DNA of 64,000 bases from NCBI RefSeq assembly GCF_964204645.1, contig NC_134030.1:11367947-11431946 (forward strand), read 5' to 3'. Shown here piece by piece: positions 16,185 to 53,229 of the stretch. Position 1 is the stretch's first letter; each line of letters begins with the position of its first letter. Made by a program: the position numbers and the translations under genes. The notes under the pieces were generated by a model. That model was not told where the DNA came from. It was given only the letters and a program-made list of their open reading frames with translations, and did no database searches. Source of the DNA: Tubulanus polymorphus (lineage: Eukaryota > Animalia > Nemertea).

Positions 16185-16208
16185 AGTTGACACAGGCATT
16201 GTACTTTG
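16185..16208 (-). CDS. 24-nt exon (P)KYNACVN
   Basis: aatttctgcag| ... |gtatga, phase 1-1. Confidence 0.55.
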
Positions 16209-52200: not shown

Positions 52201-53229
52201 ATTATTCAACGCCCCCTGGAGGCCATATACAAAAACCAATGACCTTGAAATTCACCAAAATCATAGAACAGGTTATGGGCTACAACTTTCCAATTGATTG
52301 TAGTAACACAATATGTTTAGGTATTAATATAATGTGAAAAAACTTTTTCCCACCTTACAATGAATACTGATGACCAAGATGGCCGCCAATTGCGTCATAA
52401 TTGGCTGATCAAAAATATCTCAGGTATAAAACATCGCTTTCCAAAGAATACCCTTCACAAATTGCAATGAGAAACTCCACAAAATTCTCTGTAAAAAGTA
52501 CTGATTTTGGCGAACAACAATGGCTGCCAGTCAGCCATCTTGATTCTGACAGGGCCAGTTTTTGGGCTGAAGATGTGTCCAGGGTAGAGACATGTGTAAC
52601 CTAAATATCAAGACATTACATTGAAGCGTCTTCAAAACTGCCCCAAATAACTGGATTCCGTCTACGGACGGACGAACAGACAGATGACGGACGAAAATTG
52701 AACGCAATAGCCCGCTGCAACTAAAGTCCCAAGTGGGCTAAAAATGAAAGCTCCACATAGAATATTATACCAGTTGATAGCCAAAATATGCATTTTCAGA
52801 AACCAAGATGGCCACAAATTGGCCATCTTGGATCCGATTACCAGAATTATCAAACTCATCTGGATTTTTATGTCATACGGGATATATCCGAATTTAAAGA
52901 CAATTGGTCAAAAATTGTGGTCTGTGGAATGTTCATAAGAAATCTGACGCATGCACGCATGCCAGACCACCACTAAGACACAGGATCCAGTTCCACAGTT
53001 TGAGTTAAATTTGACTCAGTAGTTAAAACATTTAGAAAATGAACTGATTTTAACTCAGAGTTCACTCTTTCAACTGTGGAACCTGGTCCAGGGGTATATA
53101 ACATAAGCCCGAATGGCCTTCGGCTAAGCGGGCTGGAAAATGAAATTAGCTTGCTGGGACATTAGCAGTTTAGATAATAAACAGTGGTAGTTATCTCCAT
53201 ATACCTTCAGAACTGGCAGCTCCTCCCAT
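16185..53229 (-). CDS. Span of a multi-micro-exon host gene (about 25 exons, about 377 aa found; 3' end not identified, may extend to the 810-878 exon or beyond); uncharacterised, probably helical, possibly N-myristoylated protein
   Basis: Series of AG/GT-bounded minus-strand exons, all symmetric phase 1-1 and open, joining without stops; shortest introns 74-94 nt. Confidence 0.8.
16938..16997 (-). CDS. 60-nt exon (V)[19 protein letters not shown]
   Basis: tttcttttccttag| ... |gtaaga, phase 1-1. Confidence 0.75.
17088..17132 (-). CDS. 45-nt exon (D)[14 protein letters not shown]
   Basis: tttgtttactttag| ... |gtaact, phase 1-1. Confidence 0.75.
17771..18063 (-). mobile_element. HINE family C short copy
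   Basis: Shares the repeat unit and the GGTAAATCTATATGCCCC...GGGGCAT end with 20121-20993. Confidence 0.65.
19305..19334 (-). CDS. 30-nt exon (E)LMAMAKKEL
   Basis: tttcctgtttcag| ... |gtatgt, phase 1-1. Confidence 0.8.
19463..19513 (-). CDS. 51-nt exon (W)[16 protein letters not shown]
   Basis: tatctttgcag| ... |gttact, phase 1-1; skipping it creates a T|AA stop. Confidence 0.7.
19753..19883. repeat. (TA)n microsatellite
   Basis: About 65 perfect TA units. Confidence 0.99.
20121..20993 (-). mobile_element. HINE family C with about 4 internal 145-146 bp tandem repeats
   Basis: ACTAG end with GAGGC/GCCTC hairpin, subTIR ATGCCCC/GGGGCAT, units recurring at 20363, 20508, 20654 and 20799. Confidence 0.8.
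21655..23468 (-). mobile_element. HINE family B full copy, interrupted by a MITE
   Basis: Both termini present. Confidence 0.8.
21936..22665. mobile_element. PIF/Harbinger-like MITE, family D copy 1
   Basis: TIR AG(C/G)CGCGTTCACACGAC, 3-bp TSD ATA, TTAGACCGGTCTAA subterminal palindromes. Confidence 0.85.
23580..25090 (-). mobile_element. Decayed CR1-group LINE 5' portion (ORF1 C-terminus plus AP endonuclease)
   Basis: [16 protein letters not shown]...YVIQEDL (ORF1); [19 protein letters not shown] and KPWF (ORF2). Confidence 0.85.
25312..25362 (-). CDS. 51-nt exon (E)[16 protein letters not shown]
   Basis: tatcttttag| ... |gtaagt, phase 1-1. Confidence 0.85.
25447..25512 (-). CDS. 66-nt exon (E)[21 protein letters not shown]
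   Basis: ttgttttctcccag| ... |gtacaa, phase 1-1. Confidence 0.8.
25645..25701 (-). CDS. 57-nt exon (F)[18 protein letters not shown]
   Basis: ttttttgtttaag| ... |gtgacc, phase 1-1. Confidence 0.7.
26634..26651 (-). CDS. 18-nt micro-exon (A)TDKVA
   Basis: ttttcattttcag| ... |gtgagt, phase 1-1. Confidence 0.8.
26733..26768 (-). CDS. 36-nt exon (V)[11 protein letters not shown]
   Basis: tctctttcag| ... |gtaaat, phase 1-1. Confidence 0.85.
26847..27181 (-). mobile_element. tRNA-derived SINE with CORE-like central domain and (TTA)n tail
   Basis: A-box-like TGGGGGAGTGG, B-box-like GGATTCGAAACC, GTGTCCTCGGGCAAGACACTT, GCGCTATATAAAT tail; candidate TSD AATTATA. Confidence 0.8.
27255..27737 (-). 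mobile_element. HINE family A copy 2, internally deleted
   Basis: Both termini match 5510-6405. Confidence 0.8.
27978..28028 (-). CDS. 51-nt exon (V)[16 protein letters not shown]
   Basis: tttcattttag| ... |gtaatt, phase 1-1. Confidence 0.85.
28920..28958 (-). CDS. 39-nt exon (E)[12 protein letters not shown]
   Basis: cttatttcag| ... |gtaagc, phase 1-1. Confidence 0.8.
29180..29218 (-). CDS. 39-nt exon (G)[12 protein letters not shown]
   Basis: tctttgtttaag| ... |gtaaat, phase 1-1. Confidence 0.75.
29912..31506 (-). mobile_element. HINE family A copy 3, interrupted by MITE D
   Basis: Colinear with 5510-6405. Confidence 0.8.
30773..31480. mobile_element. MITE family D copy 2 (reverse orientation)
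   Basis: Reverse complement of 21936-22665; TSD ATA. Confidence 0.85.
32064..32105 (-). CDS. 42-nt exon (R)[13 protein letters not shown] (acceptor ambiguous)
   Basis: tatatttcatcag| ... |gtaagt; alternative in-frame acceptors would give a 6-nt or a 223-nt exon. Confidence 0.65.
34082..34123 (-). CDS. 42-nt exon (D)[13 protein letters not shown]
   Basis: aatatttcag| ... |gtaagt, phase 1-1. Confidence 0.8.
34484..34525 (-). CDS. 42-nt exon (L)[13 protein letters not shown]
   Basis: caatttttcag| ... |gtacgt, phase 1-1. Confidence 0.75.
35529..35579 (-). CDS. 51-nt exon (E)[16 protein letters not shown]
   Basis: cttgtttcag| ... |gtaagt, phase 1-1. Confidence 0.8.
37062..37079 (-). CDS. 18-nt micro-exon (A)NKKTL
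   Basis: ttactttttag| ... |gtatgt, phase 1-1. Confidence 0.8.
   Translation of the reverse strand, partial: RIKRR
37174..37209 (-). CDS. 36-nt exon (L)[11 protein letters not shown]
   Basis: caattttcag| ... |gtaaga, phase 1-1. Confidence 0.85.
37472..37522 (-). CDS. 51-nt exon (F)[16 protein letters not shown]
   Basis: ttttttttcag| ... |gtaagt, phase 1-1. Confidence 0.85.
37597..37635 (-). CDS. 39-nt exon (D)[12 protein letters not shown]
   Basis: tatctttaag| ... |gtgagt, phase 1-1. Confidence 0.75.
38006..40369 (-). mobile_element. HINE family B copy with nested inserts (other HINE ends at about 38206 and 38791, tRNA-like remnants)
   Basis: Family B sequence at 38006-38210 and about 39640-40369; about 76-bp tandem duplication of the end plus flank at 37884-38035. 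Confidence 0.65.
40924..40998 (-). CDS. 75-nt exon (V)[24 protein letters not shown]
   Basis: tttcctttctatag| ... |gtatgg, phase 1-1. Confidence 0.8.
41543..41936. repeat. Unclassified repeat of about 390 bp, second copy at about 53727-54100
   Basis: Near-identical direct copies. Confidence 0.85.
42326..44396 (+). mobile_element. Young non-autonomous LTR retroelement (LTRs 42326-42739 and 43983-44396)
   Basis: 414-bp LTRs differing at about 3 positions, PBS TGGTGGAGAA at 42741, PPT AGAAGGGAGG at 43971, TSD TAAG or ATAAG. Confidence 0.92.
42824..43888 (+). pseudogene. Single internal ORF of about 354 codons with 3 stops: N-terminal paired zinc knuckles, coiled coil, unknown domain
   Basis: CFSCGF*...H...[22 protein letters not shown]; stops at 42917, 43352 and 43391 in one frame. 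Confidence 0.8.
44645..44870 (+). mobile_element. L2/CR1 LINE 3' ORF2 fragment
   Basis: LLYNLP...[12 protein letters not shown]...HWL...RIKCKI. Confidence 0.75.
44920..46474. mobile_element. Kolobok-like non-autonomous DNA transposon
   Basis: TTAA on both sides, imperfect TIR AG(T/G)TCAAGT..CCTCTAA. Confidence 0.65.
45327..46101 (+). mobile_element. Harbinger deletion derivative with a MADF/Myb-like remnant, nested in the Kolobok-like element
   Basis: TIR of more than 30 bp AGGCTGGCTTATGTTGACAAGCAACGCGACGC, TSD TAA; [12 protein letters not shown]...[10 protein letters not shown] at about 45711-45795. Confidence 0.85.
48088..49028 (-). mobile_element. HINE family B truncated copy
   Basis: Three internal repeat units plus the conserved body. 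Confidence 0.8.
49328..49399 (-). CDS. 72-nt exon (H)[23 protein letters not shown]
   Basis: tttccccttcag| ... |gtaaat, phase 1-1; 83-nt intron upstream. Confidence 0.8.
49483..49554 (-). CDS. 72-nt exon (V)[23 protein letters not shown]
   Basis: tttattccgcag| ... |gtgagt, phase 1-1. Confidence 0.8.
50198..50675. mobile_element. piggyBac-like MITE
   Basis: TTAA|CCCATTAGCACTCA ... TGAGTGTTAATGGG|TTAA. Confidence 0.75.
51350..53134 (-). mobile_element. HINE family H containing a nested family B copy (51722-52741) and a 105-bp MITE (52984-53088, TSD CAG)
   Basis: ACAAG end, subTIR AGCCTGCTTGG/CTAAGCGGGCT; family B termini intact. Confidence 0.7.
53205..53229 (-). CDS. First coding exon, MGGAASSE
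   Basis: ataATGG context, in-frame TGA just upstream, donor AAG|gtatat in phase 1; Gly2/Ser6 pattern. Confidence 0.6.

Follow-up and report, generated by a model that had tools for sequence, protein, structure and literature searches.

The question raised by this locus is whether a long series of very small, uniformly phased exons forms a gene and, if it does, what kind of gene it is. The window (the whole stretch of DNA analysed, 64,000 nt from the nemertean Tubulanus polymorphus) is AT-rich, with about 36% GC, and lies at C6:11.37-11.43 Mb; the genome searched was the 268-Mb assembly of 77 contigs. The original prediction had read from this stretch a chain of about 24 symmetric exons and compared them to the micro-exon genes (MEGs) of schistosomes.

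All 24 of the predicted exon lengths were located, in the order given, on the minus strand from 49554 to 16185, following an ATG exon at 53229-53205. A chain search with only the length list and splice signals as input recovered 23 of the 24, and the remaining exon (16208-16185) was spotted by reading the sequence. Splice signals and symmetry are as described, in that every listed exon has AG/GT ends and is in phase 1-1 (24/24), and the chain, joined after the ATG exon, translates to 377 aa with 0 stops. The opposite strand, which had been suggested as a null, carries 0-1 symmetric exons versus 13-20 on the minus strand. When scored with a generic splice matrix (threshold 6), the minus strand has 20 symmetric candidates whose phase-1 frame is open, and the plus strand has 1. 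The counts are 13 versus 0 with a matrix derived from a different locus, where the training exons had themselves been chosen with a window-trained matrix. The model exons contain 0 stops in phase 1, a count that is partly a result of exon selection; the two remaining frames contain 31 and 51. The hydrophobic moment of the exon peptides, a property outside all of the exon-selection criteria, is raised only at the helical angle of 100 degrees (z 4.1).

It is therefore extremely unlikely that the chain is a product of picking symmetric open AG-GT pairs. Symmetric candidates were favoured during the search, as the original prediction admits, some exons have weak sites, and the junctions are predictions. 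Against this, the strand asymmetry, the helical periodicity, and the genome-wide pattern result and in-register homology described below are all independent of selection, and they contradict such a reading of the whole gene; individual exons may yet be miscalled. Under the independent matrix the weakest listed exons are 16208-16185, 37635-37597 and 16997-16938. With its junctions predicted from DNA, the exon chain is thus confirmed as real by the strand and frame nulls and by the periodicity. It is not the complete gene, since further exons and the 3' end had been missed. The caveat that some listed exons might be false and others overlooked was apt on the second point; on the first, the listed exons hold as a chain, with a few that are weak.

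The full model (Table 1) spans 55 kb and comprises 29-30 exons coding for 438-449 aa, the lower values applying without a doubtful 33-nt exon, and 28 of its 28 internal exons are symmetric. The four exons added to the chain, namely two of 69 nt, one of 30 nt and the terminal exon, likely belong to the gene. An 85-nt intron separates the 30-nt exon from the terminal exon, whose stop has polyA-like hexamers 55 and 513 nt beyond it. At the other end, an in-frame stop lies 9 nt before the ATG, which is in a good start context. The 33-nt candidate is doubtful, since accepting it would mean a preceding intron of just 39 nt. In this region the two symmetric candidates on either side of those 39 nt (29218-29108, minus strand) would be the first choice for a mutually exclusive pair.

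Table 1. Predicted exons of the gene and associated features (window coordinates unless stated otherwise).
Feature	Position	Strand	Remark
First coding exon with part of the 5' UTR	53205..53285	-	TGA in frame 9 nt before ATG 53229; Gly2/Ser6 motif
Two 72-nt exons	49554-49483, 49399-49328	-	Chain search
69-nt symmetric exon	46980-46912	-	Missed in original prediction; acceptor 6.0, open in phase 1
75-nt exon	40924..40998	-	Chain search
Module copy A, exons of 39/51/36/18 nt	37062..37635; starts 37635, 37522, 37209, 37079	-	
Linker exons of 51/42/42/42 nt	32064..35579; starts 35579, 34525, 34123, 32105	-	Chain search
39-nt exon	29180..29218	-	Chain search
Doubtful 33-nt symmetric candidate	29108..29140	-	False, or mutually exclusive with preceding 39-nt exon
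Module copy B, exons of 39/51/36/18 nt	26634..28958; starts 28958, 28028, 26768, 26651	-	
Exons of 57/66/51 nt	25312..25701; starts 25701, 25512, 25362	-	Chain search
Exons of 51/30 nt	19305..19513; starts 19513, 19334	-	Chain search
Cys-containing exons of 45/60/24 nt	16185..17132; starts 17132, 16997, 16208	-	Last exon has weak splice sites
69-nt exon	878-810	-	Missed in original prediction; symmetric candidate
30-nt exon, outside window	about 2.07 kb left of base 1 (L007:7882-7853)	-	
Terminal exon with stop, outside window	about 2.19 kb left of base 1 (L007:7767 downward)	-	

Other elements share the window with the gene. In the intron that separates the 69-nt exon from the 75-nt exon, two nearly identical copies of a block of several hundred bases occur at 42500-42800 and 43950-44400. 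Upstream of the gene there is a degenerate LTR-retrotransposon with reverse transcriptase and integrase pieces (54900-61100, plus strand) and a GIY-YIG element (62865-63551, minus strand), and an AT-rich integrase-like remnant, judged by eye, occurs at about 10000-11100 (minus strand). An intact 272-aa ORF with a C-terminal RING finger (14890-14072, minus strand) is nested in a 15-kb intron on the same strand as the gene; it is a called protein of the contig, and its relatives carry a MULE transposase domain. A fusion of the last listed exon to this RING ORF was considered and rejected, as there is one in-frame stop.

The predicted product would be intracellular. A hydropathy scan of its first 30 aa (not SignalP) reveals no hydrophobic stretch of the kind found in signal peptides, in keeping with the non-secreted protein originally proposed, and the model protein contains no membrane helix. 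Its N-terminus matches the N-myristoylation pattern, with Gly2 and a small residue at position 6 (Ser6); this is a pattern match only, and on the strength of this predicted motif the protein is probably held at the membrane by a lipid anchor. The amphipathic periodicity of the exon peptides suggests an apparently folded, mostly alpha-helical protein. Exon-wise Pfam scans were blank, and the module described below spans introns. The protein may resemble SAM, vWA or death-fold domains.

The comparison with MEGs can be made on several grounds. MEGs consist mainly of very short symmetric exons (≤36 nt), encode a signal peptide and undergo exon skipping; their products are ≤189 aa in the cited alignment, which omits signal peptides, are often disordered, and occur in families (PMC8293314, PMC10526429). 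The present gene resembles them in its short symmetric coding exons, its transposon-rich introns and its lack of recognisable homologues outside the lineage. It differs in having larger exons, no signal peptide and a helical product of 449 aa, and in being present as one copy. Only 8 of its 28 internal exons are ≤36 nt, representing 17% of the coding bases, and the median exon is 43.5 nt, although the looser MEG exon range of 3-81 nt (PMC10526429) would accommodate the gene. The proposed MEG-like class is thus not supported, given the exon sizes, the missing signal peptide and the lack of a close paralogue. The gene is not a MEG, though the frame-safe layout is common to both, and an all-symmetric exon layout need not imply secreted variation of the MEG type.

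Whether the exons are nonetheless combined freely bears on a related proposal, in which combinatorial skipping generates many intracellular isoforms. We consider this improbable. The symmetry of all internal exons would permit it, and the 33-nt candidate and the exon only 39 nt before it could form a mutually exclusive pair. However, skip junctions that create a stop are not depleted: they make up 24 of 406 (5.9%) versus 6.7% expected from the exon ends, and include 2 single-exon skips (the corresponding values in the receptor tails described below are 1-6%). Furthermore, the amphipathic helices encoded by the exons seem to belong to a folded protein, the three exons of the module have been conserved together, and the size and secretion expected of MEGs are lacking. 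Undepleted stop skips and a module kept as three exons together are indirect indications, at the level of predicted exons, that fit constitutive splicing better than free combination. A search for read runs from RNA, in which exons supplied about 6% of the words at a cut-off of 5%, yielded DNA-like runs only: three runs over 25200-29350 (4.15 kb) behave as DNA, because introns and exons are covered alike and there are no splice joints.

The gene contains an internal duplication. The exon-length series 39/51/36/18 occurs twice, as copies A and B; when the lengths are permuted, about 0.1% of the orders contain a repeated run of at least four. Copies A and B can be aligned gap-free (p 0.005), and the geometry pattern of a 36-nt exon, a short intron and an 18-nt exon has 2 matches in 268 Mb, both in this gene, versus one match for the control pattern. 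A third module copy was sought in a scan with the profile of receptor tails (see below) and was not significant. The suggestion that the gene could evolve by gain and loss of exon cassettes is borne out by the duplicated four-exon block and by receptor tails that differ by whole blocks; in predicted exons, germline gain and loss of exon blocks is visible both within this gene and among the tails. Because the layout is phase 1-1 throughout, duplication, loss or grafting of such blocks in the germ line would leave the reading frame intact.

Relatives of the duplicated module are found in four Ig-type receptor loci on the same chromosome, about 10-10.5 Mb away, whose exons were likewise predicted from DNA. 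In each receptor a hydrophobic TM exon precedes a series of 41-61 symmetric exons, and in the receptor stretch analysed the exons upstream of the TM exon give weak Ig matches. The tails repeat a module of 51-54/36/18-nt exons. With a profile built from five tail module copies only, copy B (residues 250-293) scores 52.4, and 0 of 1500 shuffles reach this score; two kinds of shuffle were used, 1500 each, with means of 5-6 (for one, 5.3, sd 5.6) and maxima of 39 and 33, so that z is about 8. Five module types were tried, and the copy B result survives correction. Copy B has its exon junctions at the same offsets (16, 28 and 34) as the tail module, which is about 45 aa and is encoded by the 51/36/18-nt exons. 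The second-best profile match is copy A, in the same register, with a score that is not significant alone. An HMM of whole tails also marks the copy B stretch, above 600 shuffles, and a mixed-type HMM gives a weak match. On these comparisons, copy B is homologous to the tail module of the Ig receptors.

The homology is confined to about 50-70 of the 449 residues, at about 30% identity, and most other exons of the gene have no counterpart in the tails. The second 72-nt exon resembles a 69-nt receptor-tail exon (p about 0.0005 before correction for multiple comparisons), which is weaker sequence evidence than that for copy B. Colinearity of the whole gene with the tails is suggestive, close to the nulls, and was rejected.

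About 22 occurrences of the 36-nt module exon, at C6:21.7-22.8 Mb and on C9 and C19, were found with a pattern designed from both genes, whose match in this gene is by construction. Three of the copies precede a NACHT exon, the core of an NLR immune sensor, by 6.4, 5.1 and 23 kb, the link being same-strand proximity only. The present gene has no such partner: the region around C6:11.3-11.4 Mb lacks a PF05729 match, the model closes with a stop codon, and neither an Ig nor a TM exon was found within 30 kb upstream (tblastn and exon scan). Several individual copies may be mentioned. The NACHT-linked copy at C6:22267487 (minus strand) matches this gene at 7 of 11 residues, which is too short for a conclusion, and the common receptor-tail copies match at 5-6 residues of 11. 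At C6:17589497 and C6:18076072 (plus strand) the module exon has a 2-nt insertion (38 nt, frame-breaking), and each of these copies has a NACHT match on the opposite strand at a distance of about 16 kb. An open 36-nt exon candidate at C2:22287807 (plus strand), found with a loose module pattern, is possibly a divergent family member and possibly a chance match.

Elsewhere the gene stands alone. The exon-wise check for paralogues that had been suggested with the original prediction was run over the 268 Mb and matched only the gene itself; there is no close paralogue, and the gene is single-copy in this genome and probably intact, as far as the predicted exons tell. Other genes sharing the start exon were considered, and their matches are at chance level. 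The suggested search for protein relatives, run exon by exon only, gave nothing convincing in outside databases. Among 1.84 billion representative proteins there was no relative, the eight matches being unrelated repeat proteins; the gene's protein was not found in the 90% protein collection; and the ESM Atlas was blank or spurious. An RCC1 hint from the Atlas was rejected (its query was half-intronic, with 135 shared features). The called intron protein of the same contig is present in the protein collections and the gene's own protein is absent, so the gene may be unannotated; a look-up of called genes around the locus returned none. Genes made wholly of small symmetric exons escape ORF-based, and perhaps also standard, annotation.

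The negative results for annotation and RNA at the locus, the transposon-laden introns and the retrotransposon remnants upstream are also what one might expect of a relic, i.e., a silent or decaying N-terminus of a receptor or NLR that has lost its anchor and sensor exons. We regard this as very improbable. It conflicts with 449 codons free of stops and frameshifts, canonical splice sites, a proper start that carries a myristoylation motif, and polyA-like signals at the terminal exon, all of them intact despite deep divergence from the family.

Our preferred reading, held tentatively and with somewhat less confidence than doubt, is that the gene is a lipid-anchored, receptor-less relative of the tails, probably an adaptor or regulator of the receptor system, shaped by germline duplication of exon blocks. 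The gene would be expressed as a cytoplasmic, mostly alpha-helical protein of 438-449 aa, and N-myristoylation would bring it to the inner leaflet of the membrane, the side on which the receptor tails carry the homologous module. Its two modules of ~45 aa could then contact the receptor modules, module to module, and the protein would act as an adaptor, a regulator or possibly a decoy of the receptors. An unlikely account, though one to be taken seriously, is that this is an old, lineage-specific, constitutively spliced gene with a non-immune job of its own, and that the receptors share or have recruited its module without any joint work. It agrees with the single copy far from the receptor cluster, with the low identity (about 30%) of even the best module and with the many exons that have no tail counterpart. 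It does not account as readily for the fact that its detectable relatives are confined to receptor and NLR-linked exons, or for two architectures that would both put the module at the inner face of the membrane.

The gene adds a third architecture to the small-exon receptor family, one with a predicted lipid anchor and no receptor or sensor parts, and its sharing of the 51/36/18-nt block marks that block as the conserved unit. A broader and quite unlikely extension is that an undescribed intracellular signalling module of interchangeable phase-1 exons, carried by Ig receptors, NLRs and a stand-alone protein, forms a receptor-adaptor-sensor circuit through homotypic contacts, with germline exon shuffling and possibly skipping. 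The single-copy 449-aa protein offers the easiest handle on the fold of the module, a possible new interaction domain.

An analogy for the adaptor role is TRAM (TICAM2), which is myristoylated and serves TLR4 (PMC10014160). The likeness is by function only, that of a myristoylated cytoplasmic protein with the domain type of a receptor tail; the present gene has no TIR domain or sequence relation to TRAM, and its adaptor role is a proposal. Closer comparisons are with the Ig-TM receptors and NLR-linked genes of the same genome. These share with it all-phase-1 symmetric exons of similar sizes and the homologous 51/36/18-nt module with junctions in register, whereas this gene lacks Ig, TM and NACHT exons, has a myristoylation motif instead, and is an isolated single copy with two modules, most of its other exons not being alignable. 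A literature search for a nemertean family of phase-1 small-exon receptors or NLRs found none. Exon-level remodelling of candidate immune receptors has been described in brown algae (PMC3341825) and for lophotrochozoan RLRs (PMC8998645), and both resemble the present case as candidate immune receptor families with shuffling or grafting of exons. In those systems known repeats or domains are encoded one per exon, whereas here the unit is a three-exon module that also occurs in a sensor-less protein. The new part, as predicted from DNA, is this stand-alone, putatively myristoylated form, together with the pinpointing of the 51/36/18-nt module that it shares with the receptors.
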